Positions 5,448 to 57,130 of a stretch of DNA of 64,000 bases are shown one piece after another. Below the pieces are notes generated by a model. The model had not been told where the DNA came from and searched no databases. It saw only the letters and a program-made list of their open reading frames with translations. Made by a program: the position numbers and the translations under genes. This DNA is from Macrostomum lignano (taxonomy: Eukaryota), in contig NIVC01001542.1 of NCBI GenBank assembly GCA_002269645.1, positions 1-64,000 on the forward strand, in the 5' to 3' direction. The number at the start of each line of letters is the position of its first letter. The first letter of the stretch is position 1.

Positions 5448-6305
5448 ATGTATGGTCAGGGCCATTCAAATTATCCACATTCATATGGTATGCCAAGCCA
5501 AGCACCTAGCTACCCTATGGCTCATCCATCTCAGTCTCAACAGCCACCACCATATGGCTTATATGCACCGCCTTTGCCAAGTTTTGCTGCTGGCAATATG
5601 CCTGACCAGATGCCAATGCCTTTGTGTCAGCCAGGACAGCCACCTTACCAGCCAGGCCAGCCACCTTACCAGCCAGGCCAGGCACCCTACCAGCCAGGCC
5701 AGCCACCTTACCAGCCAGGCCAGCCACCTTACCAGCCAGGCCAGCCACCTTACCAGCCAGGCCAGCCACCCTACCAGCCAGGCCAACCACCTTACCAGCC
5801 AGGCCAGCCACCCTACCAGCCAGGCCAGCCACCTTACCAGCCAGGACAGCCACCTCACCAGCCACCCTACCAGCCAGGACAGCCACCTCACCAGTCAGGC
5901 CAGCCACCTTACCAGTCGGGCCAACCACCTCACCAGCCAGGCCAACCGCCTTGTCAGTCAGTGTCACAGCCCTACCAGCCAGGACTGCAATCTTATTCAC
6001 CGGGTTCCCAGCCTTACCAGCCAGCATCCCAGCCATACCAGCCGGGACAATCGTCGCAGTCACCATATCAACAAAGCCAGTTCTCAGCCAGTAGTCACAA
6101 TAAAAGGCTCGCGGATCATGCACAGCCAGCGGCATCGAAAGCCTCGTCTGTTGAACCTTCCGCGCCGCCGCCGCCTCCTTCGCCGCCGCTGCCAACGCCG
6201 CAGTCTGCCGCCCAGCCAGCTTCTACAGGCTCGGGCAACAATACAGGCAAAGAGGCCGCTTTAGACGCCTTGGCCCAGATGATGCAAGGCGATGTCAATC
6301 TTTGA
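5448..6305 (+). CDS. Pro/Gln/Tyr-rich low-complexity protein with YQPGQPP heptad repeats (~285 aa)
   Basis: GC-rich ORF inside AT-rich flanks; acceptor-like tttttttcag at 5433 just before ATG 5448; 21-bp repeats encode YQPGQPP; non-repetitive N- and C-termini stay open in frame. No recognisable globular domain. Confidence 0.65.
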   Translation: MYGQGHSNYPHSYGMPSQAPSYPMAHPSQSQQPPPYGLYAPPLPSFAAGNMPDQMPMPLCQPGQPPYQPGQPPYQPGQAPYQPGQPPYQPGQPPYQPGQPPYQPGQPPYQPGQPPYQPGQPPYQPGQPPYQPGQPPHQPPYQPGQPPHQSGQPPYQSGQPPHQPGQPPCQSVSQPYQPGLQSYSPGSQPYQPASQPYQPGQSSQSPYQQSQFSASSHNKRLADHAQPAASKASSVEPSAPPPPPSPPLPTPQSAAQPASTGSGNNTGKEAALDALAQMMQGDVNL

Positions 6306-6343
6306 CAGAAATGGGAAGAGACAGCTCTTCCTGTCAAGAGACA

Positions 6344-7640
6344 CCTTGATTTGTAGCTTAGATCAGCCTACAATTGACCTTGATTTGTAGCTTAGATCAT
6401 CCTACAGTTGACCTTGATTTTTAGCTTAGATCAGCTTACAGTTGACCTTGATTTGTAGCTTATATCAACCTACAGTTGACCTTGATTTGTAGCTTAGATC
6501 AGCCTACAATTGACCTTGAATTGTAGCTTAGATCAGCCTACAATCAACCTTAATTTGTAGCTTGGATCAACCTACAGTTGACCTTGATTTGTAGCTTAGA
6601 TCAGCCTACAATTGACCTTGATTTGTAGCTTAGATAACCCTACAGTTGACCTTGATTTGTAGCTTAGATCAGCCTACATAATGACCTTGACCTTGATCAA
6701 ATGACCTTGATTTGTAGCTTAGATCAGCTTACAGTTGACCTTGATTTGTAGCTTATATCAACCTACAGTTGACCTTGATTTGTAGCTTATATCAACCTAC
6801 AGTTGACTTTGATTTGTAGCTTATATCAGCCTACAGTTGACCTTGATTTGTAGCTTATATCAACCTACAGTTGACCTTGATTTGTAGCTTAGATCAGCCT
6901 ACAATTGACCTTGAATTGTAGCTTAGATCAACCTACAATTGACCTTGATTTGTAGCTTAGATCAGCCTACATAATGACCTTGACCTTGATCAAATGACCT
7001 TGATTTGTAGCTTAGATCAGCTTACAGTTGACCTTGATTTGTAGCTTATATCAACCTACAGTTGACCTTGATTTGTAGCTTATATCAACCTACAGTTGAC
7101 TTTGATTTGTAGCTTATATCAGCCTACAGTTGACCTTGATTTGTAGCTTATATCAACCTACAGTTGACCTTGATTTGTAGCTTAGATCAGCCTACAATTG
7201 ACCTTGAATTGTAGCTTAGATCAACCTACAATTGACCTTGATTTGTAGCTTAGATCAACCTACAGTTGACCTTGATTTGTAGCTTAGATCAACCTACAGT
7301 TGACCTTGATTTGTAGCTTATATCAACCTACAGTTGACCTTGATTTGTAGCTTATATCAACCTACAATTGACCTTGAATTGTAGCTTATATCAACCTACA
7401 GTTGACCTTGATTTGTAGCTTAGATCAGCCTACAATTGACCTTGAATTGTAGCTTAGATCAACCTACAATTGACCTTGATTTGTAGCTTAGATCAGCCTA
7501 CAATTGACCTTGAATTGTAGCTTAGATCAACCTACAATTGACCTTGATTTGTAGCTTAGATCAACCTACAATTGACCTTGATTTGTAGCTTAGATCAGCC
7601 TACAATCAACCTTAATTTGTAGCTGAGATCAGCCCACGAT
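6344..7640. repeat. 34-bp minisatellite (gaccttgatttgtagcttagatcaacctacagtt), ~38 copies
   Basis: Direct tandem repetition; a variant block (cctacataatgaccttgaccttgatcaaat) recurs at ~6673 and ~6966, indicating ~293-bp higher-order duplication. Confidence 0.95.
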
Positions 7641-8156
7641 TGGCCTTCATAGTTTGCTGATCGCTTTGTTTCTGGAATTTTCTAATTCATTCATATTGAT
7701 TTCTAATCCATTTTTGCATTCCGCCTTGGCTAACCATTCTAACCATTTTTGAATGAAGCAGAAATCAGAATCCAAAGCTATTTAACTAGCCCACTACTAC
7801 GATCGTAGATGTGAAGTAGATATTTAAAAATGTGTGCTCGTAAGATAGTGTATATCTGATGAAGTTAAAATAAAATAACAAAGTCCATCAGCTTCCTGAT
7901 TAATGACTTATTACGAGAATATTTAATGAAAGTAAGAGTCTCGTATATTTTAGATTCTTGCGCCAACCAAAAACTCTGCCGTTAACTTTAAAGTTTTTTA
8001 ACAAAATGTATTTTTGTTTTCAATATAACTAATGACAGTGGTGCCTTATTGTTTATTTAGAAGATAAATTTTGTCTGGCTTATTTTTAATGCATATAAAA
8101 TCTTACTATAACGTAATAATTTAGTTACTTAGTGAATAGAGTGAAGTGTGAAAAAT

Positions 8157-9483
8157 TTAAGCACCAGAGGTATTCAGAGATTTAAGCGCCGCAGATGTCA
8201 GAGATTTAAGCGCTACAGGTATCAGAGATTTAAGCGCCGCAGATGTCAGAGATTTAAGCGCTACAGGTATCAGAGATTTAAGCGCCACAGGTGTCAGAGA
8301 TTTAAGCGCTACATGTATCAGAGATTTAAGCGCCGCAGATGTCAGAGATTTAAGCGCTACAGGTATCAGAGATTTAAGCGCCGCAGATGTCAGAGATTTA
8401 AGCGCTACAGGTATCAGAGATTTAAGCGCCGCAGATGTCAGAGATTTAAGCGCTACAGGTATCAGAGATTTAAGCGCCACAGGTGTCAGAGATTTAAGCG
8501 CTACAGGTATCAGAGATTTAAGCGCCGCAGATGTCAGAGATTTAAGCGCTACAGGTATCAGAGATTTAAGCGCCGCAGATGTCAGATTTAAGCGCTACAG
8601 GTATTAGATATTTAAGCGCCACAGGTATCAGAGATTTAAGCGCTACAGGTATTAAATATTTAAGCGCCACAGGTATTAGAGATTTAAGCGCCGCAGATGT
8701 CAGAGATTTAAGCGCTACAGGTATCAGAGATTTAAGCGCCACAGGTGTCAGAGATTTAAGCGCTACAGGTATCAGAGATTTAAGCGCCGCAGATGTCAGA
8801 GATTTAAGCGCTACAGGTATCAGAGATTTAAGCGCCGCAGATGTCAGATTTAAGCGCTACAGGTATTAGATATTTAAGCGCCACAGGTATCAGAGATTTA
8901 AGCGCTACAGGTATTAAATATTTAAGCGCCACAGGTATTAGAGATTTAAGCGCCACAGGTATCAGAGATTTAAGCGCCGCAGATATCAGATTTAAGCGCT
9001 ACAGGTATCAGAGATTTAAGCGCCGCAGATGTCAGATTTAAGCGCCACAGGTATCAGAGATTTAAGCGCTACAGGTATCAGATTTAAGCGCTACAGGTAT
9101 TAGATATTTAAGCGCCACAGGTATCAGAGATTTAAGCGCTATACAGGTATCAGAGATTTAAGCGCCACAGGTATCAGAGATTTAAGCGACGCAGATGTCA
9201 GATTTAAGCGCTACAGGTATCAGAGATTTAAGCGCTACAGGTATCAGATTGAAGCGCTACAGGTATTAGATATTTAAGCGCCACAGGTATCAGAGATTTA
9301 AGCGCTACAGGTATCAGATTTAAGCGCTACAGGTATTAGATATTTAAGCGCCACAGGTATCAGAGATTTAAGCGCTACAGGTATCAGAGATTTAAGCGCC
9401 ACAGGTATCAGAGATTTAAGCGACGCAGATGTCAGATTTAAGCGCTACAGGTATCAGAGATTTAAGCGCCGCAGGTATCAGAG
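8157..9483. repeat. 24-bp minisatellite (tcagagatttaagcgc-core) with alternating variants
   Basis: Units ...gctacaggta and ...gccgcagatg alternate as 48-bp dimers; 22-bp deletion variants appear in the distal half. Confidence 0.95.
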
Positions 9484-9553: not shown

Positions 9554-12500
9554 GCCGAATCGAGCTCCGATCGTTTGGCCGCCTTCCAACAGGAAGTGGA
9601 GGCTCTGGTGCGATTCAAAGACGAATACTTTGCCCAGCAACAGGAGCAGCAGCAACGGGGCGGTCGTTCAGCGGCAGTTGAGGCTCGGGTTGAGCAGATC
9701 GCCTCCCGATACGCCGATGTCGGCGCCTCAATCAGCGGCCCGGACAGTCGCTGCGCCCACGCCCTGTCTATGGGCAAACTCTACCACTGCTTGGAGGAAT
9801 TCGACCAGCGAGCCTTGGACAATTTGACTACGGCCGCGAAACTGAAGCCGGACCAGCCGGAGGCCTGGCGCTTGCTCGGCGAAACCTACTGGAAACGGCG
9901 GGACTATCAGTCCGCTTATAACTGCTTCAACAGCGCATTGCAGCACGGCAGGGATAGCGCTGTGCTGCGCAATCTGTCCATGGTGCTGCGAGCTCTGCCG
10001 TTTGCCAGTGCGGCAGATCGGCTGGCTAAGGTTGAGGAGAGTCTGGCCAAGGCTAAGGAGGCCCTGCAGATGGATATTAAGGTGAGGCGCGAGATTCTGT
10101 AACTCCTGTCTGGGCTGTGTGCACCCTGTCACATTGTCACCACAACCGGCGAGAGGCACACATAGCGTGGGGATCAAGGACTACTTAGGACGGGAAAATA
10201 CGTTTCTCGGAAAACTTTAAGAGGCAGGCTTTTCAGAAAGGCAAGACATCGAAAGATGAACTCTGGGTCTGCCACCTTTAAAAAGCAATAACCATTTTTT
10301 GTGCTGAAAATGAAAGCCTTCTATCTTCGTTATCCTTGGCAGTCGTACGCACAGGCTCACATTTACACAGGAGTGTACAGGGGCCCTGACTTTATTTATC
10401 GTTAGGCATGTACACTTCACTTGTGCTTTGGGGGTTGGACCTCGAGGGCGCTAATTATTTAGCCCCAAATGAATGCCACTGCACTTGGAATCGAGCCTGG
10501 GCCGCTGGCTCATCATTGGCTATACGGCTCCCCTTGTAGGTAAAAAAAGGTAAATCTGTAGGTTGGTAAGAATAAGAACCGGATAACAGGTGAATTATAT
10601 AACAGCCCTCTGTCTCACTCACTCGAAACAATTTCCCTGAAATGAGTTACCTCTGAAACAGCAAGGGGTTTGTCTACGTATCGTGCCTTTGATAGTAGTA
10701 TATTCTGCATCTATAGATTTGATTAAATTCTCATTTAATAAATCTACTTGCAATGCCGCAGGACGGGCGCAGCTGGGCGGTGCTTGGCAACGCCTACCTG
10801 AGCTGCTACTTCACCAAGGACCAGTCCAGCACCTCCATGCGCTTGGCCATGTCCGCCTACAGCAACGCTATGAAGGACCCGGTGGCCAGCAGCGACCCGG
10901 ATCTGCACTACAACTCTGCCATGGCGCACGTCTACCTGGATCAGTACGAGCAGGCGCTCAGCGGATTTCGGATGGCCCACAGGCTTGACCCTAGTTGGCC
11001 GCAGGCTCAGGTAATCTCGGATGCGGCAGTGTTGAGATGCTGGGAATAAAAAACATTTCGGAAATAATTGGAAGTGGAAGTAATTGATTGCACCTGCCCT
11101 ACTCGGCCAGATGTGCAACCGGCAGCTCAGCCGCAGCTATTGCGCGGCGCATCCAAGGACGGGGGGGGGTCGTCACACACACCCTCAATTACCCGGCACA
11201 GCTAATGCTGGCACCCATTTTACAACTGGGTGAACTGAAGCAATGCCGTGTTTAAGTGTCGGCAGTGGGTCGGGATTCGAACCCCTGACCTTTCAGTCTT
11301 AATTCGGCACTGTAACCACAAGGCTACACCCCTAATTAATTAGTCTTTAATTCAAAGATTATGGAATAAGAAAAGAATGCCTTTGATGAGGCTATAGGAT
11401 TCTGAAGATCTCAGAAGATCTGTAAGTCGGTATGATGCTGTGTAGTGATGAGGCTGGTGCTATTTGATAAAAACTGGCTCTTATCCTGCAGGAGAAAGTC
11501 ACCCAGCTGCCTCGCATGCTGAGTAGCATCCAGGACATCATCGACAGTCGCGGCCGTTTGAAGCCTCGCGTCTATAAATCCATGATGGAAGGCTTCGCCC
11601 AGCGCCGGGTCAAGGATCTCGGCCCCTACGCTGGTGGCGGCTACTCTGACAGCCGAGGCGAGAGCGTCGCCCTCGCCGAGGTTCGTCTGAGCCAGCTAAA
11701 AGTGGGAGCCAACCCTGAGACTGTGCTGCTGCTGCGAGTGATCGGGCTGCCCCGAGCTGATGACCAGGTAGGTACTTCCGGCGGCTGCTTTTACTCGGTT
11801 TCTTTCGCACTTCCGGTTTTTACTTTAAGTAGCAAATTTATAATTTAGGTTGGTGTTAGAAGTAACAATGTTACACTTCCGGGTTGTATATTTCAGTAGC
11901 TAATTGATACTTCCGGGTTGTATATTTCAGTAGCTAATTGATACTTCCGGGTTGTATATTTCAGTAGCTAATTGATACTTCCGGGTTGTATATTTAAGTA
12001 GTTATTTAATACTTCCGGTTGGTATATTTTAGTAGTTAATTAATACTTCCGGTTGGTATATTTCAGTAGTTAATTAATACTTCCGGTTGGTATATTTCAG
12101 TAGTTAATTAATACTTCCGGTTGGTATATTTTAGTAGTTAATTAATACTTCCGGTTGGTATATTTCAGTAGCTAATTAATACTTCCGGTTGGTATATTTA
12201 AGTAGTTAATTAATACTTCCGGTTGGTATATTTTAGTAGTTAATTAATACTTCCGGTTGGTATATTTCAGTAGTTAATTAATACTTCCGGTTGGTATATT
12301 TTAGTAGTTAATTAATACTTCCGGTTGGTATATTTTAGTAGTTAATTAATACTTCCGGGTTGTATATTTAAGTAGTTATTTAATACTTCCGGTTGGTATA
12401 TTTTAGTAGTTAATAATACTTCCGGTTGGTATATTTCAGTAGTTAATTAATACTTCCGGTTGGTATATTTCAGTAGTTAATTAATACTTCCGGTTGGTAT

Positions 12501-13801
12501 ATTTTAGTAGTTAATTAATACTTCCGGTTGGTATATTTTAGTAGTTAATTAATACTTCCGGTTGGTATATTTCAGTAGCTAATTAATACTTCCGGTTGGT
12601 ATATTTTAGTAGTTAATTAATACTTCCGGTTGGTATATTTCAGTAGCTAATTAATACTTCCGGTTGGTATATTTAAGTAGTTAATTAATACTTCCGGTTG
12701 GTATATTTTAGTAGTTAATTATTACTTCCGGTTGGTATATTTCAGTAGTTAATTAATACTTCCGGTTGGTATATTTTAGTAGTTAATTAATACTTCCGGT
12801 TGGTATATTTTAGTAGTTAATTAATACTTCCGGGTTGTATATTTAAGTAGTTATTTAATACTTCCGGTTGGTATATTTTAGTAGTTAATTAATACTTCCG
12901 GTTGGTATATTTCAGTAGTTAATTAATACTTCCGGTTGGTATATTTCAGTAGTTAATTAATACTTCCGGTTGGTATATTTTAGTAGTTAATTAATACTTC
13001 CGGTTGGTATATTTTAGTAGTTAATTAATACTTCCGGTTGGTATATTTCAGTAGCTAATTAATACTTCCGGTTGGTATATTTCAGTAGTTAATTAATACT
13101 TCCGGTTGGTATATTTCAGTAGTTAATTAATACTTCCGGTTGGTATATTTTAGTAGCTAATTAATACTTCCGGTTGGTATATTTCAGTAGCTAATTAATA
13201 CTTCCGGTTGGTATATTTCAGTAGTTAATTAATACTTCCGGTTGGTATATTTCAGTAGTTAATTAATACTTCCGGTTGGTATATTTTAGTAGTTAATTAA
13301 TACTTCCGGTTGGTATATTTCAGTAGTTAATTAATACTTCCGGTTGGTATATTTCAGTAGTTAATTAATACTTCCGGTTGGTATATTTCAGTAGTTAATT
13401 AATACTTTAGGTCGGTATATTCAACTAGTTAGTTGATAATTCGATAGCAGAAAACGTTTACAAAATTTTCGACCGTGTTTTGTTAAAATTTAAACTTTCA
13501 ACCGCTCCATTAGGTTTGCCTCTCGGTATGCGCAATGGACTCAGACGAAGCCTGCTCACTCGTCAACATATTCAATATCTCGGCGGACCGAGGCCTCACA
13601 GTCGGCGACGCCATGGCGATCCCGGAGCCCACGCTAAGCAGGTTGGATTTCGCTGACAGCGAGACGGGCCGGAAGTTCCAGTTCCCAATAGTGCGGGTGC
13701 CCTCGCCAGACTGCCTGGTGGTGAATGGCAAGAAGGCCAAGGCCAGTGCATGGCGCAGCGCCACCGTGTTCTCATCCCAGGTGTCCAGCTCGTCCACCTG
13801 A
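9554..13801 (+). CDS. TTC5: Tetratricopeptide repeat protein 5 (TTC5/STRAP) orthologue, ~447 aa; exons 9554-10081, 10762-11010, 11492-11767, 13514-13801
   Basis: All introns GT-AG and phase 0. Motifs AAKLKPDQPEAWRLLGETYWKRRD, LRNLSMVLR, QMDIK|DGRSWAVLGNAYLS, DPDLHYN, LDPSWP, GDAMAIPEP and VRVPSPDCLVVNGK match recalled human TTC5 (EAWNQLGEVYWKKGD, QMDVHDGRSWYILGNSYLS, GDSVAIPEP, LVVNGK). The initiator Met lies upstream of the 9553 acceptor. Confidence 0.93.
10146..10530 (-). mobile_element. Interspersed repeat family 2 (probable tRNA-derived SINE) in TTC5 intron 1
   Basis: Shares acacaggagtgtacag, atttatcgttag.catgtacacttcac and tttagccccaaat..atg..actgcacttggaatcgagcctgggcc with 29270-29550; the minus strand has a B-box-like GGCTCGATTCC near its 5' end. 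Confidence 0.6.
11097..11331 (-). mobile_element. tRNA-headed SINE family 1 (CORE-like body) in TTC5 intron 2
   Basis: Minus strand has A-box TAGCCTTGTGG, B-box GGTTCGAATCC, then GCATTGCTTCAGTTCACCCAGTTGTAAAATGGGT; homologous to four other copies in the window. Confidence 0.8.
11872..13410. repeat. 34-bp intronic minisatellite (tacttccggttggtatattttagtagttaattaa), ~45 copies
   Basis: Fills most of TTC5 intron 3; highly homogeneous units. Confidence 0.95.
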
Positions 13802-15651: not shown

Positions 15652-16920
15652 ATGGACGGTCAAAGCAGCAATGCGACTTCCGCCGGTACAGGACAACTCG
15701 AAGCGGCGTCAACTTTGAGTGAACGTCAGCGAGACCAGATCCAGCATATTAGTCGGTATAGAGATGTGCTTCTTCTAAGACTTGAATCCATGCAGATAAA
15801 CCAGGCTGGCCAGCCGCTCAGTCTTCGGCATTTAAGCAACGTAGTTGACTGGCCAGAGTATTACGTTCGAGTCCAGACTGGCTCTAGTAAAGTAGACGAG
15901 TTGATTGCAGATTTAGATACGTTTTTCGGCGCCAGTCTGGCTCAGCTGAATCAGGTGCGCGATGAGGCCAGACAGAAGCTGGCAAGATTTTTTCCGAGCT
16001 CAGTGGAAGCGGAGCAGCTTGAGTTGCGCATGTTCCAGCGTCTAAGATCTTGTCAGGAGGCCAACGAGTCGAATTTCGAAGAAATCTATCAATTTGCAAT
16101 GGTCGCTCTGTGCTCATTTCTGCACTGGCTGCAGCCGTCGCCTTGGGAGCGTCGGCAGCAACTTAGCAAACGAATGCACTGGCTTCACGAGCAGTACCAG
16201 GACACCATCAAGCAGCGCATTGACGCAGAGTATCGAAGTAATCCTTTCTATGCTCAGACGCTTCAGAGGTTGTGCCTTGTGTTGAAAGCGCCGGATTCTT
16301 TCTTGGAGAAGCGCTCATACTCCGAGGGCATTGTCGGACCGGTTGATCGTCTGGAAGCGTTTCTGCAAAACTTCTCCAATCAGACGGCTGAGCAGCGCCT
16401 TAAAGACCAGCTGATCTGTCGGATGCGGATTTTCCATCGGCAGCACGGAGATTACATCAGAAAGCGCATGGAAACTAGCAGTATTAGCCCGGTCGTCTTG
16501 GACAAGCTTCGTAAAATGCTCGCCGACTTTGAATCACCCGAGTCATTTTTCCTGCATTATAAAGACGATTTGGAAGCCATGCAAAAATTGCTGGATCGAT
16601 CCGAGTCCACTCTTGAAGCCGTATTGCCGGACAAATTGCATCCGAGCTTGCGCAAAGTCCGCACAGAGGCTCGCGCGAAATTGGCGCAATTGTATCGGAG
16701 TCCCGCACTTGGTGACTACTATGTAGACCTGCTGCTGAAGCTGTACCCGAAACCAGAGAAGCTGGAGACTCACCTGTACAACCGGTGTCGAAGGGTTACA
16801 TCGGACAGTGCCGAGCTGGTTTTATACGAGCGATACATAAAGAATCTACTGATTGTGCTCAACGGTCGCTGGCATGAGAGCCTGTTAAGACCGTTTCTAA
16901 TCGAAGAACGCGAGCTTTAG
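15652..16920 (+). CDS. MED15-derived shuffled protein (middle-domain/KIX/middle/middle/KIX), ~422 aa, single coding exon
   Basis: 449-codon ORF with ATG at 15652 after acceptor ctctttacag. Segments LSERQRDQIQHI, ERRQQLSKRMHWLHEQY and EQRLKDQLICRMRIFHRQH resemble NERQQVQVQRMRQLHQQH of the 26203 gene; RTEARAKLAQLYRSPALG matches the KIX repeat RVETRRKLANLYRSPAPG. Confidence 0.8.
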   Translation: MDGQSSNATSAGTGQLEAASTLSERQRDQIQHISRYRDVLLLRLESMQINQAGQPLSLRHLSNVVDWPEYYVRVQTGSSKVDELIADLDTFFGASLAQLNQVRDEARQKLARFFPSSVEAEQLELRMFQRLRSCQEANESNFEEIYQFAMVALCSFLHWLQPSPWERRQQLSKRMHWLHEQYQDTIKQRIDAEYRSNPFYAQTLQRLCLVLKAPDSFLEKRSYSEGIVGPVDRLEAFLQNFSNQTAEQRLKDQLICRMRIFHRQHGDYIRKRMETSSISPVVLDKLRKMLADFESPESFFLHYKDDLEAMQKLLDRSESTLEAVLPDKLHPSLRKVRTEARAKLAQLYRSPALGDYYVDLLLKLYPKPEKLETHLYNRCRRVTSDSAELVLYERYIKNLLIVLNGRWHESLLRPFLIEEREL

Positions 16921-17011
16921 TATCGTAGCTACGCTCGTAGTTTGCGCGACTTTTTGGTGATTGGGTTTCTTAGGCCTAATGGAGAGATGTGCAACAGCTC
17001 AGGCGTAGGTT

Positions 17012-17237
17012 TAGTGCGACGCATCTGAAGGCTGTTTACGGCTGTTCAGTCAAAGGACCGGGATAGGGGGTCGCCGCACACACCCTCAATTACCTCAGCT
17101 AATGCTGCTGGCACCCATTTTACAGCTGGTTGAACAATGCAGAGTTAAGTGTCATGCTTGTTTCAAGTCGGTCAAGAATCGAACCCCCGACTTTTTAGTC
17201 GTGAGTCCGACGTTCTAACCACTAGGCTACAACCCCC
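17012..17237 (-). mobile_element. SINE family 1 copy
   Basis: Minus strand GGGGGTTGTAGCCTAGTGGTTAG...GGGGGTTCGATTC head, CCAGCTGTAAAATGGGTGCCAGC body and shared 3' body. Confidence 0.8.
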
Positions 17238-17830
17238 AATTGATAATATATATATAATACCTGAACACTATTCGAATACATGTATATTGAAATCTACTGA
17301 TCTTGTAGGTCATTGTTATAAAATAAGATTTTATCTTGATTCTGGGATTTTGATCGTTTTGCACGCCGATAGCTGAACACGTCTGCGAAGTGTTATTTGT
17401 GCTCACCACAAAACGTACTCGTTGTCGAAGTCTGCTAAAACTGGCAATTGAAGTTACGCAAAGAACCCAGCTTCTAATCTGCGGGGTCTATCAGTGTGCA
17501 TTTCTACTGTAGGTGTAAAACTCTGTTGCCTTTGATTGCTTTTATTGCATTCATTTATCTGCTTTTATTCGAAACTAAGTACGAAATTTTGACTGGCGCT
17601 CAGACTTTATAAATCAGTAAAGCAAAGTTTTTTCAGTTTCCGCATTTCAACACTGCCGCTCAAGTTTAACGTTTGTATGCAATTTTGTAGTTTTCAGAAA
17701 ATACAAAAATGACTAAACTTGTTTGCTCTTATCTTTGATAATTTTTCTTGTTTTTCTTTAAATTGATTTCAAACCAACATACTAGGATAGAAAAATGGAA
17801 GTGCTAGACTGCTCTACATTTCTTAAATAG
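17012..17830 (+). repeat. Segmental duplicate A (3' flank of the 15652 gene)
   Basis: SINE plus ~600 bp colinear with 21360-22240 (e.g. tattcgaat, gatct.gtaggtcattgtt.taaaata, ttcatttatctgcttttatt, gctcaagtttaac). Confidence 0.85.
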
Positions 17831-19250: not shown

Positions 19251-20170
19251 GTTATTCTTTTACGCCTAAAAACCATTAAAATGGCACGACTCAGCTCATT
19301 GGTTTTATGATTATATTTTATCATATTAGCTGACTGTGTAACAGAGATGATAAAATAGATTCAAAAAACCAAAGGTTCAAGCTGTGCCATGCATTTTTAA
19401 TGACTTTTAGATACAGGAAATGCACGTAAAATCGAAAAACTATTTAGAATCCTAATTTTCTGAGAGAAAGCTTTATAAATATCAATAGAGCTATAACAAA
19501 GGCACAACATATCAAAATATAAACATTGGGTCTGCCTCCTATCGAAAGCAAAAAAAAATTTGTGTTCAAAAATAAAGACTTCCTTTTTTCGTAGGGTATT
19601 TTTCGGTGAACAGTGGCCTTCAAAACGTTTTTAATAGATTTCGAGTGTTGCGTCCTTCTACTTTAGTATGGTCTACTTAACATGGTTGTTGCAGTCTCAC
19701 GCAGAAACTGCGCGAGTTCAAACCCAATTGCGTCATTCCAAAGAAGCCTCTATGTTCCTTTCGCTCCTCGACACTCAAAATATAGATTTTTTGGACTAAA
19801 CTTGTACACACGAAGCCTTGAATGCCCTAGATATGTGCAAGTTTAGTCTATAAAAATCTATGAGAATTATTTTGAGTTTCGCTTCCTGATGAGCTAAAGG
19901 CTTCCTTAGCTTGCTTTTCAAGTTTTCGTTAATATAAGTCCAATTTTCGTAACTTTTTTGTCAAACCCTGCTTGCTAGTGTCATTGTGAGCAGAATGACA
20001 CATCATTTGTGTACATAGGTTACTCGGGCTCCACTTTATGAGCTCAAGTTGACAGGCCCTTTGGTTAAAGTAGTTCAGAAGCTGGATCCATTTATGCTAA
20101 TTCATATCGAAAGTTATCAAATTAAGTTTAAAAACCATCTTCATGCGCTACCGCGGCTTCAGAGAGTAAA

Positions 20171-21249
20171 ATGGATAACCAAAACCGTGCCCTACGATAC
20201 GTCATTGTGCCGCCACCGCAGCAGCTGCGTGCTGAGACTCGATGCAAGCTGGCTAATCTGTACCGCAGCCCTGCACCTGGAAACCAGGTAGCTCAGCTGC
20301 TGGACCGCTATCCACCGCTGAACAACTTGAAGATTCCATTTTCAGGCATTGTCAGGCTCAGCAGCGGAGTGGTGGCGTCAGCTTTGATCAGCACCAGTAC
20401 CTGAGCCTTGTGTCCAAGGTGGAAGACGCGCTGACGGGTCGCCTGTCGCATCAGCGACAGCAGCTGCGTGCTGAGACACGACGCAAATTGGCTAATCTGT
20501 ACCGCAGCCCCGCACAGGGACACCATGTAACCGAGCTGCTGAACCGCTGTCCCACCGCTGAACAGCTAGAAGATTGCCTTTTCAGGTATTGTCATTCTCG
20601 CCAACAAAATGGTGGTGTCAGCTTTGATAAGCAGAAGTACCTGCACGCTGTGTCCACTATGGAAGGCGTACTGACCGGTCGCCTGCCGCTTAAGCCACAA
20701 CAGCTGCAGCAGATGCGTGTTGAGACTCGGCGCAAATTTGCTAATCTGTACCGCAGCCCTGCACCTGGAAATCTGGTAGCCGATCTGCTGAGACAATATC
20801 CTACTGTTGAGCAGCTGGAGGATTTGGCTTTCAGGCGTAGTCAGGTGCAACAGCAGAGAAGTCGCGCCAGCTTTGATCAGCAGTACCTGAGCATTGTGTC
20901 CAAGCTGGAAGACTTACTGACAGGTCGCCTGCCGCCGGCGCAAGAGCAAAAGCTGGAGCAGATGCTGCAGCAACAGCAGCAGCGGGAGCAGCAGCTGCGT
21001 GTTGAGACTCGACGCAAGCTGGCTAATCTGTACCGCAGCCCTACACCTGGAAACCTGGTAGCCCAGCTGCTGAGCCGCTATCCCACCGCTGAACAACTTG
21101 AAGATTTCGTTTTCAGGCGTAGTCAGGCGCACCAGCGGAGTGGTGGCGCCAGCTTTGACCAGCAGTACCTGAGCCTTGTGTCCAACCTGGAAGGCATACT
21201 GACGGGTCGCATGCTAAGCCTGCTTCCATTCGATGAACGCGAGATTTAA
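20171..21249 (+). CDS. Tetra-KIX protein derived from the MED15 N-terminus (~359 aa if one missing C at ~20312 is restored); possible pseudogene or assembly error
   Basis: Four ~75-aa repeats QQLR.ETRRKLANLYRSP.PG...YPT.EQLED..FR......SFDQQYLS.VS.LE..LTGR. Repeat 1 reads tatccaccgct where repeats 3-4 and the 26203 gene read tatcc[ct]ac; adding one C joins ORFs 20171-20404 and 20410-21249. Confidence 0.8.
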
Positions 21250-21359
21250 TATCGCATCTAGTTCGTGCCACATGTAACTAATTGTTTGTCCGATATATAA
21301 GCATTATTTAGTGTAATAATAAGTAATAATTTACTACAACTGGCCTAATAGGAAAACCC

Positions 21360-22240
21360 ACTATGGCGTATCGGAAAGCTGCGTACGGCTGTTCGGTCAA
21401 AAGACTGGAGTTGCCACACGTTCCAAGTAGGTCGAGAAACGAACCCCCCCTACCTTTTAGTCGTGCTCCGATGCTCTAACCACTGGTTTTAATAGAACCC
21501 CCAATTTGTTATATATGAAGGACCTGAATATTATTCGAATGCATATTTGAATCTAGTGATCTCGTAGGTCATTGTTTTAAAATATGATTTTAGTCGTATT
21601 GCACGCTAGTTGCTAAACGCGTCTGCCCAAAGTGTTATGTATGCTGACCAAAAAATGTACTCGTTGCCGTATTTATCCCTGCCTGCCGAAGCCTGCTGAA
21701 ACAGGCAATTGAAATTGCGCAAAGAACCCAAAGTAGCTACTATCTAAAACAGTAGCAACTTGCGCCCATATGCGGTCTATCAATGTGCATTTTTACTAAT
21801 GGTGTAAAACCCGTTAAGAACGTTACCATGGCAAGAATCGCTAAAGAGTCATTGTAAACAACTCTCTAGTGAGTCTAGCGACTCTGGTGCAACTATTATG
21901 ACTTTTTAACGACTCATGCGACGGAGAGGCGACTGTTGCGTCACAAGCGCGTCACGTGAGTTGCAGAATCGTGAAACAGTCGTTCTATTGTATTCATTTA
22001 TCTGCTTTTATTAAGTACGAAACTGGCTGGCGCTCCGAATTTTTAAATCAGTGACGCAAAACTGTCGCAGTCGGTAGTTTTTTTCAGTTTGCGCATTTCA
22101 ACAATTAACTACTGCTCAAGTTTAACAACTTTTGTATGCAATTTTGCCGTTTTATCCAGAAAGTAGATACGAAAAGGACTGAATTTGTTTGTTCCATCTT
22201 TGGTAATTTTATTGGTCTTTTCTTAATTTATTTCAAACCA
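21360..22240 (+). repeat. Segmental duplicate B (3' flank of tetra-KIX gene) with internally deleted SINE1 copy at 21360-21503
   Basis: Colinear with 17012-17830, with an extra insertion at ~21810-21985. Confidence 0.85.
21810..21985 (-). mobile_element. Fragment of the GAGTC/GACTC-rich element
   Basis: cccgttaagaacg...gaatcgct...gtcattg.aaacaact.tcta.tga.tc.agcgactct matches the reverse complement of 44250-44368; absent from the paralogous position in duplicate A. Confidence 0.7.
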
Positions 22241-23319
22241 ACAGGAAAACACTACGAGACTGACTTGAAGCCAAAAGCTACGTTATAATTCTCGACTCTT
22301 ATTTTCGTTACCTCTTATACTTTTACGTTGACCATACACAATATTTCTATGGCTAACTGTGCCAGAATCATTTGAAGCGTGCATTCTTCACTTTGGTTGG
22401 TAAAGTTGACTTTTAGCGACACAAATGGACACCTAATGCCAAACGAGCGTAAATCAAGAACAGCTGGCAACAGACCTCGGCAATCACACTAAGAGAGCCA
22501 ACCAGCTAGGGTTCCTCACTGCCGCAAAATCTATAGGCAGTAGCACAAACACGTGCTGGACTATTGACACCCCTGTACTGACTCACTGGGGCGGAGCGGG
22601 GGTAGTGTGGAAAGGCGCGGTTGGAGGATTTCAGCTGCGGGGTAAGAGCCAACAAATGAGCCTTGGTTTTAAAAATGCAATAAAATGCTTCTGTTTAACT
22701 TACTACTGAACTGAAAGTAGCTTACACGCAAATGTGCTGAGTGGCTCATCTAGTTATTCTAGTATCTGGGTTTTTTGTCAGTTGAATGCACGCTTTATTT
22801 GATTCTGGCACAATTATTGCCGGATGGTTAATGTTTTGTCTATGGGCTTGCCAATGTCCAACAAGCATCATAGCTGAGACGCTGACATTCCAGCGTTACT
22901 CCACAGCCCACAGATGGTTGCGAGTAGGCAAGAGCTGTCAGCCTTGCTACATTAAGCAAACGTATCTCGGATTAAATTCAAGGCGCTTAAGCACAAATAG
23001 GCTGCAAAAAGCTATATTAAATACTTAATTATTTATAGGGTACAAGCTGTTGAAACCCGCGGATTTTGAACCCGGGGAATTTCAATCCCTGGAACTATTT
23101 TTGCATGTACTCGTATTCTAAAATCTGAGGTCAAACTCAAACAAAAACTCGTTAATATATAGTTAGGTTAGAATTAAACATAAAATAGAGTACATTTGTG
23201 AAAAATTAGGATTTGAGGCAAACATTTATATTGTTGGCTGGGGTGCTGCGAACAGGCAAACTCTGGCCTCTGCCTCTCCTTATGTCCCTTGGATTCTTAG
23301 AAACTTCGACCTTCTCTTC

Positions 23320-23621
23320 TGTTTCCTCTCCTCTCTCTTGTCTCTGTCTCTTCTCTCTCTCTCTCTCTCTCTCTTCTATCCCCTATTCTCTCGTCTATTC
23401 TCTCTTCCTTCTATTTTTTTATCCCTCCTCTCCTCCCTCCTCTCTACTCTCTCCTCTCTCCTCTCATCTCTTCTCTTCTTTCCTCTCTCCTCTCTCCTCT
23501 CTTCTATTGTCTCTTCCCTCACCTCTCTTCTCTCTTGTCTTTGCTCTCTTATCTATCTCTTCTTTTATCTTTTCTCTCTTCTCTCTTCTCATTCTTTCTG
23601 CATGTTTTCTCCTCTCTCTTT

Positions 23622-23698
<77 letters not shown>

Positions 23699-24416
23699 CT
23701 CTCTGCTCTCTCCTGTCCCATATCTCTTTCTCCTCTAATCTCTCCCCTGTTTCCTCTCCTCTCTCATCCTTTCTCCTCTTTCCCCTGTCCTCTCGGTTTT
23801 CTCTCCTCCCCTCCTCTCTCCTCACTCACTTCTCTCTCCCTTTGTCTCACCTCTCATCTCTTATTTCTATCCTTTTTTTCTTTTCACTCTCCCATCTCTC
23901 GTCTGTTCACTCTCGTCTCTGGTCTCTCATCCCCCTCTCTCATCTGCCATCTTTACTCACTTATACTCGTATGTTTTCTCACCTCTCTTATCTGTACTCT
24001 TCTCTTTCCCCTCTTTTGACTCCTCTCTTTCCTTTCTCCTTTTTCCCTTCTCTTCTCTTCCCTCTTCTATTCTCTCCCTCTCTTGTCTTCTCTCTTCTTT
24101 CTTCACTCTCCTCTCTCCTCTCATATATCGCGTTCACTCTCATCTTTGCTCTCTACCCCCTCTCTCTTCTGTCATCTTTACTCTCCACTCTCCTGTGTAC
24201 TCTTCTCTTTCCCATCTACTGAATCCTCTCTTCTTACTCCTCTTCTCTTCCCTCTTCTATACTCTCTCCCCTCTATTCTCTTCTCTTGTCTCTTTGCACT
24301 CTGCTCTCTCTTCCTTCATCTCTCATCTCTACTCTCTCATCTCCACAATCTCATCTTTCCTCTCTCCTCTTCTTCCCTTTACTCTATCATTTCTCCTTTC
24401 TCCTCTCTTCTTTCTC

Positions 24417-24478
<62 letters not shown>

Positions 24479-24790
24479 TCTTATCTCCTCTCTTCTCACT
24501 CCTCTCTCCCTCTCTCTCCCCTCCTATCTCCTCTCTGTTCTCTATTCTCTATTCTCTTCTCACTCTTCTCTACTCTCCTCTCTCATCGATCCTCTGTCTC
24601 ATCTCTCCCCTCTTCTCTCTTCCTCTTCTCACCTCTACTCTTTCCTCTCCCTCCTGTCTCCCCTCCTCTCGCTTCCTCCTCCCATATTCTCTGCTCTCTC
24701 CTCGTCCTCACCCCACTCGTCTCTCCTGTTATCTTATATTTTTTCTCTTACCCCCCTCTCGCCCTTTCTCTCTTTCTAATAGTCTATTCC
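23320..24790. repeat. CT-rich polypyrimidine low-complexity tract with (CT)n cores
   Basis: Almost purine-free top strand; pure (CT)n at ~23625-23695 and ~24418-24475. Confidence 0.95.
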
Positions 24791-26062: not shown

Positions 26063-26202
26063 AAATACTTTTGTAAACCTAATTTGTAGTGTTCCGTAAA
26101 CTCAATCTCATTTCATATAAATTCATACCGTAAGCTGTAAAATAAAGTTTTGAAAAATGAAATCACCATCGTTATCTTTCTGAGCTACCGGCTTCAGAAA
26201 AA

Positions 26203-28916
26203 ATGGAGCCGAACCAAAACTATGGCCAACGATACCCCATCATGCAGCAACAACAGCTGCAGCAGCTGCGTGTTGAGACTCGACGCAAGCTGGCTAATCT
26301 GTACCGCAGCCCTGCACCTGGAAACCAGGTAGCCCAGCTGCTAAACCGTTATCCCACCGCTGATCAACTGGAGGATCACGTTTTCAGGCGTTGTCAGGCT
26401 CACCAGCAAGGTGGTGGCGTCAGCTTTGACCAGCAGTACCTGAGCATTGTGTCCAAGCTGGAGGACGCACTGACAGGTCGCCTGCCGCAGCCGCAACAGC
26501 CGCAGCAGATGATGCAGCAGCAGCAGCCGCCGCCTACTCAAGTGATGCAACAGCAATTGCAGCAGCAGCAGCAGCAGATGATGCAACAGCAGCCTCCGCC
26601 GCAACCTCAGCCTCAGGTGATTCGGCCTCAAATGCCGACAGATCCGCTGGTGTCGCTTTCAAACATGGTCGGCGGCGGCCCGGTTGGCGTCAGCAACATC
26701 GTTGTCGGTGGTGCCCGGATGGGGCAGCAGAGTGTGCCGTTGCAGCCTCGCATGGGGACCAGGCCTGTTCCGCAGCAGCAGCAGCAGCCGCCTCCCAACC
26801 AGCTTCCACCATTGAATGAGCGTCAGCAGGTTCAAGTGCAGCGCATGCGGCAGCTCCACCAGCAGCACAGCGAGACGGTCAGAGCCCGGATGGAAAATTC
26901 GCACGGCAATGCGGCCAATTTTGAGAAGCTGCGCCAGATTTGCAACATTCTCGAGACGCCAGAAAATTTTGTACGCAACCAGCGGGATCCGGATAAAATT
27001 GACAACACAATCAGGCAGTTGGAGAGCATTCTGCGGCCCAATGCGCCTCACGCTCAGGCACTGCAGCAGCAGCAGCAGCAGCAGCAGCACATGCTACAAC
27101 AACAGAGACTTCAGCAGCAGCAGCAGCAGCAAATGCAACAGCAGCAACTGCAGCACCAGCAGCTACAGCAGCAGCAACAACTCCAGCAACAGCAGCAGCA
27201 GCAACTGCAACAACAGCAATTGCAGCAGCAGCAATTGCAACAACTGCAGCAGCAACAGCAATTTCAGCAGCAGAAATTGCAACAGCAGCAGATGATGTCG
27301 CAGATGCAGCAACAACAACAGCAGCAGCAGCAATCGCCAATGCCCATGTCCAGTGCAGCTCCTGACAGCGTCGCTGCTTCGTCGCATGACATTCCTCCGG
27401 CGCCTCGTCGACTTGGTGAAACACTTCTTAAAGTACGTTAAAGTACGCCAACCAATCACCTCTTAGTTGACTCTATAAATTCGCTGTCAAGGTTCACCTT
27501 TAATACAAAAGAGTTCGGCCTCCAATACCTTTTTTTAGAGCAAAACATCATCAACTTGGTGTTTTTAAAGCCGTTCCCTATCTGTCCGTTGCCCAACGAT
27601 TCAAAATCACTAACAAGTTTTCTCCAGCCAACGATTGAAAGAAGCAACCAGAATCCATGGAACATTCTGTCACGATAGATTGCATCCGCCGTCAGTTGCG
27701 TCCCCACCGGAGTGGAGAGGGGGGCATGTCCCCCGGCCCCAGTAAAAGCTGTGGGGGGGGGACATGCCAGTGCTTTGTCCCACCCGCCTCACCTTGTAAC
27801 CCGCTACGGAAATCAATCATTTCTCCTTTGGGTGCCAAAATGTAGCGCCTTTGGCGCCAAAAAGAGTGCCTGCGGCGCCAAAATGGGTGTCTGCATGCGG
27901 TGCCAAAATAAGTGCCTGTCTGCGGCGCCAAAATGAGTGCCTGTCTGCAGCGCCAAAATGAGTGCCCGTCTGCGGCGCCGAAATGATTGCTAGAAACACC
28001 GATTCCTAAAAATGTAGGAACTCAGTCATGTAGAATTCTTGGCTTTGTCCCCCTCCCTACTAAGAAGTCCATTGGCGGCGCCCCTGTCTGCCGTCACAAG
28101 TAAAGATTTTTACCAACAAAATCATCTCTTCCACTCCTCCAGGAAATCGAATCTGTTCTCAAAAGTCCCGTCTGCGATTCCGTCTGGTCTCGCTTCGCCT
28201 CTGAGGTCCGTTCGGCGAATCAGGGCATTGTCCCGCCTCGTGACACTCTGTTCATCCCCGTCTCCGTTGACTCGGCAGCTGTTGGCGCCTCCGACGCGCC
28301 GCCGGTGACTCCCGCGCCGGCTCCGGATCAGCCGTTGCGCTCCGAGCTCGCCGACCTGCCGCCCTACTGGCGCGTCCGAGTCCTGACCAGCTCGGCCGGC
28401 CCTGTCGATCCGGACAGCAGCAAAGACGACGCCGCCGACAATCAGGAAGACGAGTCGGTGGATGCTGCCGACGCTTCTAAAGTTGAGGGCAGCGACGCGG
28501 TAACCTCTAGACGGGTTCGTCTGCGCGCCGTCTACACGAACCGGCACTTGATGCCCGACGGCGCCGCGCCGGAGCTGCTGATCACCCTGGCGCCCGGCTA
28601 CCCGACTGTCCGGTCCGCCACCGCGCGACTTCTGCCGCCGCGCCTATCGGCAGCTGATAGCGCCGACAATGGCAGCGACAAGAGCAGCAACTGCAGTCGG
28701 AGCGCCGAGCTGACCGCGGACGCCGCCGAACTGCGCCGGCTGATCCAGACCGAGTGGCGGTCGGCCTACGTGGAGTACAAGCGGGTCTATCGGGACAGGA
28801 ACAGCCTCACGGGAGTGCTGGACGCCTACCACAAAGCCCTGCTAGTGGCCTACGATAGCTGGGCCCCCGGCAGTGAGTTCAGCCTGGCTCAGGTGCGAGC
28901 CTTTATGCGGCGCTGA
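26203..28916 (+). CDS. MED15: Mediator subunit 15 (MED15/ARC105) orthologue, ~667 aa; exons 26203-27432, 28143-28916
   Basis: N-terminal KIX-like LEDHVF...QQYLSIVSKL (human MESHVF...DEYLSLVARL), polyQ tracts, middle domain FEKLRQICNILETP (LSKMKSLLDILTDP). The phase-0 splice gives TLLK|EIESVLKSPVCDSVWSRF (PLLDAVLANIRSPVFNHSLYRTF). C-terminal LRSELADLPPYWRVRV...PELLITLAPGYP...SLTGVLDAY matches LQGEVARLDPKFLVNL...PPLELSVPADYP...SVTALLNTW. Confidence 0.85.
27693..28086. mobile_element. hAT-type MITE in the MED15 intron
   Basis: Imperfect TIR cagttgcgtcccca / tggcggcgcccctg; 8-bp TSD tccgccgt vs tctgccgt; internal ~24-bp repeats gcggcgccaaaatgagtgcctgtct. Confidence 0.7.
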
Positions 28917-53815: not shown

Positions 53816-54448
53816 AATAAATTATTAATATTCTTTTACATTCTCATTGAAGAATCGGACCTGTCGAGGGACATTGGGATGGTCAGTTGACCCCCTTGAC
53901 TCCCCTGTGTAGCTGGCATAACGGACTGTTAAGATGGATGTCTGGATAAATTATTTGAAAAATAAAACTGCCTCAGTTAGTGTTGAACAACTTTATTTTG
54001 CGTAAAACAAAACACACTTAGTCAAGTTTTTGTGTCACTCAAATGTATCTTCAGCAGAGAAGGCAATTCTCTCTTCAAGCAAATCTCCATAGAAACGGCA
54101 GATCAACATGCATGTAAAGTTTTTTTTAATTTCCGTTTGTTATACAAAGATTTATTATCTGAAACATTTTACCGCAAAGTTTGTTTAACATTTAATTTCC
54201 CTGGTTCAACAGCATGTTTCAACCTCAGAAACTTCACGGCTATGGGAAAAAGGAAGTTTGCTGTAAAACAAGTTTGTTCAACACTCTTCCTTTGTTATAA
54301 TTTTTGGAAGCCTCTTTCCACAGAAATTGACAAGAGATTTATCGATTATTTTATAGATAGCAGCACTACAAGTTTTGAGACTGTGAGAAAGAAACTGCGA
54401 TTAAAAAACTTGCTTTTATCACTTAGTTGCTTTGATCAGCTGCATGTA

Positions 54449-55128
54449 AGCTGACTGAAGAGAGGGTGAAGCTGACTGAGGAGAGGGTGAGGCTGACTGA
54501 GGGGAGGGTGAAGCTGACTGAAGAGAGGGTGAAGCTGACTGAGGAGAGGGTGAGGCTGACTGAGGGGAGGGTGAAGCTGACTGAAGAGAGGGTGAAGCTG
54601 ACTGAGGGGAGGGTGGAGCTGACTGAGGAGAGGGTGAAGCTGACTGAGAAGAGGGTGAAGCTGACTGAGGGGAGGGTGAAGCTGACTGAGGGGAGGGTGG
54701 AGCTGACTAAGGGGAGGGTGAAGCTGACTGAGGGGAGGGTGAAGCTGACTGAGGGGAGGGTGGAGCTGACTGAGGGGAGGGTGGAGCTGACTGAGGAGAG
54801 GGTGAAGCTGGCTAAGGGGAGGGTGAAGCTGACTGAGGAGAGGGTGAAGCTAACTGAGGGGAGGGTGAAGCTGACTGAGGAGAGGGTGAAGCTGACTGAG
54901 GGGAGGGTGAAGCTAACTGAGGAGAGGGTGAAGCTGGCTAAGGGGAGGGTGAAGCTGACTGAAGGCAGAGTAAAGCTAACTGAGGAGAGGGTGAAGCTGA
55001 CTGAAAGGAGGGTGAAGCTGACTGAGGAGAGGGTGAAGCTGACTGAGGAGAGGCTGAAGCTGACTGAAGGGATGGTGAAGCTGACTGAGGAGAGGCTGAA
55101 GATGACTGAGGAGAGGGTAAAGCTAACT
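54449..55128. repeat. 21-bp purine-rich minisatellite (gtgaagctgactgaggagagg), ~32 copies
   Basis: Direct tandem repetition. Confidence 0.95.
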
Positions 55129-56558: not shown

Positions 56559-56590
<32 letters not shown>

Positions 56591-56602
56591 ATGGATGGAT
56601 GA

Positions 56603-56634
<32 letters not shown>

Positions 56635-56876
56635 ATGGATGGATGGATGGATGGATGGATGAATGGATGGATGAATGGACGGATGGATGGATGAATGGAC
56701 GGATGGACGGATGGATGGATGGATGAATGGACGGATGGACGGATGGATGAATGGACGGATGGATGGATGGATGAATGGATGGACGGATGGATGGATGGAT
56801 GAATGGATGAATGAATGGATGGATGGATGGATGAATGGATAGATAAATGGATGAATGGACGGATGGATGGATGGAT

Positions 56877-56909
<33 letters not shown>

Positions 56910-57094
56910 AATGGATGGATAAATGGATGAATGGATGGATGGATGAATGGATGAATGAATGGATGAATGGATGGATGAATGGATGGATAAATGGATGAAT
57001 GGATGGATGGATGAATGAATGGATGGATGAATGAATGGATGGATGAATGGATGGATAAATGGATGAATGGATGGATGGATGAATGGATGGATGG

Positions 57095-57130
<36 letters not shown>

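Follow-up and report, generated by a model that had tools for sequence, protein, structure and literature searches.

Can a gene be little more than its neighbour's N-terminal domain repeated, and, where one of its copies carries a broken reading frame, is such a locus a gene at all? The question is raised by positions 20171–21249 on the forward strand of contig NIVC01001542.1 from Macrostomum lignano (assembly Mlig_3_7, GCA_002269645.1). The analysis covered this contig from its start to 64 kb, hereafter the window, and window coordinates are the same as record coordinates. Three genes are named in what follows: gene A (15652–16920), gene B, which is the four-unit array gene in question, and gene C (26203–28916). 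K stands for the repeat unit, M for a helical module of ~80 amino acids (aa), and B1–B4 or K1–K4 for the four units of gene B. Our reading, to which we assign a probability of roughly 0.55, is that gene B is a young, Macrostomum-restricted, trans-spliced neoblast gene, that its array of four K units derives from gene C, and that its product would present uncoupled docking domains.

The assembly was built with Canu on PacBio reads and polished with Pilon, and for the gene models a genome-guided transcriptome was used, in which the mRNA ends were placed by spliced-leader (SL) and poly(A) reads (PMC5730564).

Results

Four copies of a neighbour's domain

The gene B region consists of four head-to-tail units of 72–73 codons each, all on the forward strand and running from LR[AV]ETR to LTGR. 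Unit 1 (K1) occupies 20225–20442 and reads LRAETRC…LTGR after a missing C is put back; unit 2 (K2), the most diverged of the four, occupies 20464–20682, unit 3 (K3) 20713–20928 and unit 4 (K4) 20995–21210. Between the units lie Q-rich linkers that are 7, 10 and 22 residues long, and a 12-residue tail, MLSLLPFDEREI, then ends the protein (21211–21249 with the stop codon). Tandem Repeats Finder reports the array with a 249-bp period and a score of 743. An earlier reading made from the letters alone, the sequence-only reading, had described four tandem repeats joined by short Q-linkers. The repeats and the linkers were found as described, and the tail, which is homologous to the gene A tail LLRPFLIEEREL, had been missed.

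The sequence-only reading had also placed the repeats close to the domain of the gene at 26203, and this was borne out. The N-terminal domain of gene C matches all four gene B units (tblastn, E 1e-15 to 1e-36) at 68–83% identity, while the gene B units are 57–79% identical to one another. Its other match in the 64 kb is the second helical unit of gene A (16648–16791, E 1.2e-10, tblastn), and tblastn found no further copies in the window beyond genes A and B. In a comparison of the gene B and gene C units, all length differences are in frame, and 32 of the 72 positions, arranged in a clear pattern, do not vary across the five units (four of gene B and that of gene C). As had likewise been claimed, the protein has no middle or C-terminal domain; it is four copies of the gene C N-terminal domain. 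Gene B thus encodes an intragenic tandem-repeat protein that arose by partial gene duplication and has its own start, stop and untranslated regions (UTRs).

The annotated coding sequence (CDS) of gene B in the window, P0001, is 5′-partial (20398–21249, forward strand, 283 aa). It starts inside unit 1 directly after an AG (CACCAG/TAC), and the same type of context is found again in units 3 and 4.

Gene B reads as a composite transcription unit

The two ends of gene B resemble different neighbours. At the DNA level its 5′ end (20137–20467) matches gene C (26174–26506) at 81.5%, the match beginning ~10 nucleotides (nt) before the acceptor site. At the other end, the tail, the stop codon and ~560 bp of downstream sequence match the 3′ end of gene A at 70–86%: the 3′ UTR and downstream flank of gene B (21250–21810, forward strand) correspond to the gene A downstream stretch 16932–17521, the mRNAs being 2067 and 1871 nt long (PMC5816591 Suppl. 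Table 2). Judged from these alignments, gene B is therefore a full but composite transcription unit: its 5′ end resembles gene C, its 3′ end resembles gene A, and between them lies the K unit, amplified four-fold.

Gene A, from the same cluster, is like gene B in having the K unit, the C-terminal tail, the 3′ flank and a CDS start past an AG acceptor. It is unlike gene B in having two module types and in being far more diverged, its units being 37–40% identical to the B and C units. We propose that A, B and C form a three-gene tandem cluster downstream of TTC5, in which gene B would be the young, intronless and Macrostomum-restricted member. Its leader, start codon and repeat unit would have been taken from the 5′ end of gene C, and the ~73-aa domain would then have been amplified to four.

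Transcription and trans-splicing in neoblasts

Gene B is transcribed, SL-trans-spliced and, at the transcript level, enriched in proliferating somatic neoblasts. Its cluster MligTCv3c-11554.1 comprises Mlig028310.g4 (2067 nt) and Mlig028310.g5 (1871 nt), both flagged {TRANSSPLICED} and 'non-conserved' (PMC5816591 Suppl. Table 2), and placed in the categories Irradiation, Int S/G2/M, S/G2/M no gonads, Neoblast and Neoblast stringent (PMC5816591). Because these transcripts are listed in a published data set, gene B is a transcribed gene and not merely an open reading frame (ORF). Had reads borne out the deletion and had neither transcript nor peptide been found, the sequence-only reading would have had the locus as a pseudogene; Mlig028310.g4 and Mlig028310.g5 have measured expression, with log counts per million (logCPM) of 3.5–5.8. 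G1 cells are at the lower value, 3.5, and G2/M cells at the higher, 5.8, a log fold change (logFC) of 2.38 or ~5-fold at a false discovery rate of 5e-14 (PMC5816591). Cut heads give a logFC of 1.86 and juveniles one of 2.33, and after irradiation expression is lower, with logFC of −0.44, −0.54 and −0.60 (PMC5816591).

Species-specific clusters make up 69 of the 489 stringent neoblast clusters, gene B among them, and human homologues are found for 83% of the stringent set (PMC5816591). In that work gene B is a member of the 'stringent neoblast' transcripts and is labelled by chance Pfam matches (CAMSAP CH, DUF3837). Gene B is therefore already annotated and listed in a published table, but its repeat structure and its descent from a neighbouring gene are not described there and are uncharacterised for this species-restricted repeat gene.

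The annotated 5′-partial CDS starts of the cluster, all four of them, lie directly past an AG: CTTTACAG/AAG in gene A (15628), TTTCTGAG/CTA in gene C (26185), TTTCAG in the intact copy of gene B and CACCAG/TAC in P0001 (20398). These positions are consistent with SL trans-splicing.

A frameshift confined to the window copy

The window reads CC at 20312–20313 within 'CGCTATCCACC' (context 'TATCCACC' at 20310–20317, forward strand), where both other genomic copies, as well as the homologous position in units 2 and 4, have CCC. This 1-bp deletion, which had been noticed from the letters at ~20312, shifts the frame. The ORF from the normal ATG (20171–20404, forward strand) comprises 77 codons with the stop at 20402–20404 and holds the first part of unit 1, and the frame 3′ of the lesion is open as far as 21249. 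The sequence-only reading counted three open repeats in 279 codons; the open frame was confirmed, the count begins at a GTG, a start in the bacterial code. It further stated that, with a real frameshift, a three-repeat product would need a downstream start. There is no AUG for such a product: the first in-frame AUG after the lesion, at 20659 and with two out-of-frame upstream AUGs ahead of it, yields 196 aa with two complete units.

Nor is the missing base the only lesion, as had been supposed. The 5′ leader of gene B (20140–20170, forward strand) holds the trans-splice acceptor TTTCAG in the two other copies, where the annotated mRNA and CDS begin right past it; in the three-way alignment the window has TTCATG here (20140–20145). 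Programmed frameshifting was set aside because intact copies of gene B exist.

The protein cluster of P0001 has two further members. P0003 is PAA59367.1 ('hypothetical protein BOX15_Mlig028310g4, partial') on NIVC01002272.1; its four units are intact, it is open over 359 codons and it is identical to the window sequence after the one-base repair. It begins 'ATAASESKMDNQ', and the second base past the AG of TTTCAG is the first to complete the reading frame. P0002 (196 aa) lies on NIVC01001545.1, where gene B has a 22-bp deletion near the start of unit 1, with GTGC microhomology at its ends, and two synonymous changes. All three contigs share these four units within differing flanks, and an assembly artefact as the source of the array is therefore ruled out.

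The order TTC5, A, B, C on one strand is the same at all three loci. Between the window and NIVC01002272.1, 6 kb of flanking sequence differ by 38 substitutions and 7 indels, and the B–C spacer is 4.9 kb long in the window versus 1.9 and 2.6 kb in the two other copies. Given these flank differences and kilobase-scale spacer differences, the copies are distinct loci, and a single locus that was assembled in triplicate is ruled out. The 'haploid' Mlig_3_7 comprises three subgenomes, named S, L1 and L2, which are paralogous and diverge by 1.9–2.4% in single-nucleotide polymorphisms (PMC10733133), and the three copies would most simply be assigned to these. The frameshift is specific to the window copy, and the genome retains one intact copy either way.

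Is the 1-bp deletion real? We lean slightly towards an unpolished PacBio error. The sequence-only reading had raised a long-read homopolymer error, and the intact copy on another contig supports it. Across gene B (1.2 kb), all that sets the window apart from the intact copy is the missing C and the TTCATG acceptor, with no substitutions, whereas the flanks show ~5 substitutions per indel; indels alone, one of them in a C homopolymer, are the signature of PacBio error. Near-identical sequence present in several copies would, judging from the published method (PMC5730564), also be hard for Pilon to fix. To a real, subgenome-specific lesion, which would leave this copy with at most a 77-aa fragment or the 196-aa two-unit product, we give a little less than even odds. 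That the gene B locus tolerates disabling mutations is evident from another copy, in which unit 1 has undoubtedly lost 22 bp and, with them, its frame. In addition, the neighbouring CDSs on these contigs have no frameshifts, and residual assembly errors in coding sequence are thus uncommon here. The annotated 5′ end in the window (20398) also differs from that of the intact copy.

Is the unit a KIX domain?

The repeats had been taken for KIX-like domains, and standard tests did not bear this out. Among the seven units (four of gene B, two of gene A and that of gene C), none matched KIX (PF02172) or KIX_2 (PF16987). The best Pfam match was to Med15_N (PF09606) at E=0.17, with 12.1 bits against a cut-off of 24.1 and over profile positions 31–48 of 72, for one unit of the seven, that of gene C; it is the sole transcription-related weak Pfam match to the units. 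As a positive control, the human KIX scores 99 bits on its Pfam profile. The other Pfam matches of the repaired array, P0001 and single units (CAMSAP_CH, DUF3837, uDENN and FERM_M) are below threshold and due to chance. Alignment of the seven-unit profile with the human MED15 KIX by hhalign gave a probability of 0.6%, and sequence and profile searches of the PDB with the units found no KIX.

The structure prediction proposed as a check delivered a confident four-helix model of the unit and no link to KIX. The AlphaFold2 (AF2) model has a predicted local distance difference test score (pLDDT) of 86.1 and a predicted template modelling score (pTM) of 0.68, with helices at 2–20, 26–34, 38–53 and 60–76. 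Against the PDB, Foldseek, a method weak on small all-helical domains, returned nothing at E<=0.001 and no KIX in the 12 matches at E<=10. Its top matches are four-helix bundles, the best being the Rx coiled-coil four-helix bundle (E=1.4).

What remains is a similarity in the region of helices 2–3 of KIX. Smith–Waterman alignment with the human MED15 KIX scored 38–42 for the units C, B1, B3 and B4 (z 3.2–5.2, p 0.002–0.0125 against shuffles), while B2, A1 and A2 showed no significant similarity to the human KIX by the same method; reversed-KIX and six wrong-partner (off-diagonal) controls were not significant. In these alignments, QLEDHVFRR…QQYLSIVSKL falls on DMESHVFLKAKTRDEYLSLVARL, and the predicted helices 3–4 fall on KIX helices 2–3. 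The KIX label for the unit is thus, at the sequence level, weakly supported, and the unit is probably the KIX-equivalent of gene C with a short helix inserted.

Like the KIX of MED15 (ARC105/Gal11; 2GUT), the gene C unit lies at the extreme N-terminus of a protein that is rich in Q and whose regions follow a MED15-like order. It differs in that helices 1 and 2 are separated by an additional short helix and a conserved 'LYRSPxPG' loop, in that 9 residues are inserted between helices 2 and 3, and in scoring below every family threshold. Gene B differs further in carrying its unit four times with nothing else attached.

Is gene C a divergent MED15?

Gene C (26203–28916, forward strand) has two exons and consists of a K unit, polyglutamine (polyQ), an M unit, a second polyQ and a C-terminal domain. 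Its likely intron, 27381–28105 (donor 27381, acceptor 28105), fits the annotated 668-aa product; by our own reading the Q-rich protein has ~662–667 aa.

The profile searches with gene C were negative. Exon 1 matched no Pfam family at E<=1, the M unit and two ORF pieces from further downstream, one of which (28305–28916) is the exon 2 coding part, none at E<=10, and the 264-aa C-terminal segment none at E<=0.01. Gene C matches neither Med15_M (PF21538) nor Med15_C (PF21539), for which the human MED15 control gave 2e-51 and 3.5e-38; the human sequence was checked against 7EMF_O. In the PDB, phmmer and hmmsearch with gene C and M-unit profiles found no MED15 chain, and hhalign of the M-unit alignment with human MED15 gave 2.6%. 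Pairwise BLASTP with human MED15 gave high-scoring segment pairs that were colinear but non-significant. The C-terminal domain shows no similarity to human MED15 (p=0.28), and an AF2 model of the C-terminal 269 aa, made without an alignment, is of low confidence (pLDDT 38.7).

One further segment does resemble its human counterpart. With the annotation-consistent splice of gene C, the M unit and the segment after the second polyQ align colinearly with human Med15_M over positions 1–106 (score 49, p=0.004), including the motif PTK..PLL....SPV. Gene C is, on these alignments, a probable MED15-like coactivator of very divergent sequence.

It could also be that gene B is functional while its unit is a lineage-specific four-helix module and not KIX, that gene C is not MED15, and that the resemblance is one of chance among helical, Q-rich sequences. 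This we hold to be somewhat unlikely. Speaking for it are the uniformly negative profile and fold tests, with a partial Pfam match in a single unit and hhalign values of 0.6% and 2.6%, the four-helix bundles heading the Foldseek matches, the units B2, A1 and A2 that show no KIX similarity, and a gene C product that misses Med15_M and Med15_C and whose C-terminal domain is no closer to MED15 than chance. It has to explain, however, why two independent segments match their human MED15 counterparts in order (p=0.002 and 0.004) while the controls are null, and why helices 3 and 4 are predicted just where the unit aligns with KIX helices 2 and 3. It has also to account for the MED15-like order of an N-terminal helical domain, polyQ, a central helical region, the 'PTK..PLL....SPV' motif and a C-terminal domain.

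Constraint or decay?

As the sequence-only reading had proposed, dN/dS was examined among the repeats. The values are 0.48–0.76 among gene B units, except for the B1–B4 pair (1.64), and 0.39–0.61 versus the gene C unit. Compared with the five-way consensus, the gene C unit has an omega of 0.25 and the gene B units collectively an omega of ~0.77. The collective value is not different from 1 (p=0.12). The intact gene B copy has stayed free of stops despite 92 substitutions (neutral simulation, P=0.037). These data fit relaxed constraint on the gene B units and a gene that is young, with selection on it weak or in part diversifying.

In an exhaustive profile search of 1.84 billion representatives, which found P0001 and P0004, no homologue outside M. 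lignano was detected, and there is therefore no cross-species evidence of conservation. A Cys-rich repeat protein, P0005, gave a weak match in that search (E=6e-4) and was regarded as spurious and unrelated. A homologue search with the N-terminal 287 aa of gene C returned the window's own protein only. The gene C product itself is apparently absent from these libraries, and the lack of matches is thus weaker evidence than it appears.

Could gene B then be a decaying by-product of local duplication, transcribed through the gene C 5′ signals that it has kept, with no selected function and with the frameshifts marking the onset of pseudogenisation? We consider this unlikely. An omega indistinguishable from neutral, with 1.5–1.6 for units 1 and 4, agrees with decay, as does the absence of a homologue beyond the species; the 22-bp deletion on NIVC01001545.1, with its GTGC microhomology, cannot be a sequencing error, and the window copy is also without the upstream acceptor. 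Nevertheless, one copy is open over 359 codons although its units diverge by 5–17% from the consensus, with P(no stop)=0.037, and every indel keeps the frame. Of the 72 unit positions, 32 are the same in all five units, and three independent comparisons of sorted cells show expression that is strong, reproducible and specific to a cell type. Loss of a redundant copy after genome multiplication is, moreover, expected even for functional genes. A processed retrocopy or retropseudogene is out: the homology to gene C extends from ~10 nt before the acceptor to a point within the CDS, what follows at the 3′ end comes from the tail and flank of gene A and not from gene C, and the genes stand in tandem on the same strand.

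Gene A and the rest of the window

Gene A (15652–16920, forward strand) encodes 422 aa, matches P0004 and has the modules M-K-M-M-K followed by a tail as in gene B (…PFLIEEREL). None of its three genomic copies is disrupted, and the third differs by ~11 aa. Its K unit K_A2 matches the K unit of gene C at E 1e-10, and its module M_A3 matches M_C at E 1e-9.

Upstream of the cluster, TTC5-like exons (~9575–11850, forward strand) have TPR and TTC5_OB Pfam matches, and the other copies show synteny for them. From there to gene A, past the end of the last TTC5-like ORF at 11848, lies a 34-bp minisatellite (11875–13442, ~46 copies, 95% matches), to which the NIVC01002272.1 copy aligns in many registers. 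Downstream of genes B and A, the stretches 21367–21810 and 17020–17521 are homologous (70–86%). A tRNA-like segment at ~21360–21480, downstream of gene B, in which ARAGORN called no tRNA, is possibly the remnant of a short interspersed nuclear element in the 3′ UTRs.

The B–C spacer contains ~1.4 kb of CT-rich low complexity (23311–24703) with spurious long 'SLSLSL' ORFs, and is ~3 kb longer here. Within the gene C intron, 27830–27990 holds short 'GGCGCCAAAATG(A/G)GTGCCTGTCTGC'-like motif repeats with overlapping spurious ORFs on both strands. Further minisatellites lie at 5628–5952 (21-bp CAGCCAGGCCAGCCACCTTAC, 11 copies), 6343–7647 (34-bp, 38 copies), 8155–9483 (24-bp, 56 copies), 54448–55128 (21-bp, 32 copies), 56424–57346 ((TGGA)n, 0.9 kb) and 63073–63789 (31-bp, 23 copies). 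A strong G skew at 54–58 kb is due to the minisatellites of that end.

Discussion

One of the questions posed by this locus is what a protein made of four docking domains might do. The gene B product would present the N-terminal, ligand-binding domain of the putative gene C coactivator four times over, in a protein that has neither the polyQ nor the C-terminal part, which would anchor the complex. With four docking domains and no such anchor, binding of partners is proposed to be multivalent but uncoupled from the complex. Gene B may in this way bind the partners of gene C and act as a competitor, a buffer or a scaffold in stem cells, in essence the multivalent activator trap that the sequence-only reading had suggested.

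Several points weigh against this account of gene B as a young neoblast gene with uncoupled docking domains. First, two of the three genomic copies are frameshifted in unit 1, and no copy seen of gene A, gene C or TTC5 is disrupted. Second, the omega of the gene B units is not different from 1. Third, the exhaustive profile search found no homologue outside M. lignano. Fourth, the Mlig028310 expression values do not distinguish between the three copies. Fifth, membership of KIX and of MED15 fails every standard test. Finally, the shuffle tests were framed after the resemblance had been noticed, and their results are therefore to be taken as hints.

The sequence-only reading had it that KIX normally occurs once per protein, which is too strong. 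Tandem KIX arrays are known in plants: KIXBASE records as many as six KIX domains arranged in tandem for Brassica oleracea, and there are tandem KIX proteins in rice (PMC5668377, PMC3936767). The tandem and stand-alone KIX proteins of plants (PMC5668377, PMC3936767) are alike to gene B, as we tentatively read it, in offering the activator-docking domain of a coactivator without the rest of the coactivator. Unlike the plant arrays, which are recognisable as KIX, the gene B array is from an animal, is restricted to a species and is not recognised by profiles.

A more far-reaching version, in which MED15 spawned an adjacent, taxon-restricted, module-shuffled family of A (M-K-M-M-K) and B (K x4), with gene B as a stem-cell-enriched array of KIX-derived domains, a multivalent, Mediator-free activator sponge or clustering scaffold that tunes neoblast transcription, we regard as a long shot. 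If true, gene B would encode the first KIX-array protein from an animal, one that is naturally dominant-negative towards a subunit of the Mediator tail.

For work on Mlig_3_7, the locus illustrates that subgenome copies can bear different lesions or uncorrected long-read errors in one and the same gene, and a frameshift on a single contig thus tells little by itself. For the biology of the organism, should the unit be a diverged KIX, gene B would be a natural experiment separating activator binding from Mediator anchoring, set in a stem-cell model that is tractable for transgenesis and RNA interference. Gene B is, in addition, one of the few species-specific neoblast genes, and one whose origin is legible directly from the locus.

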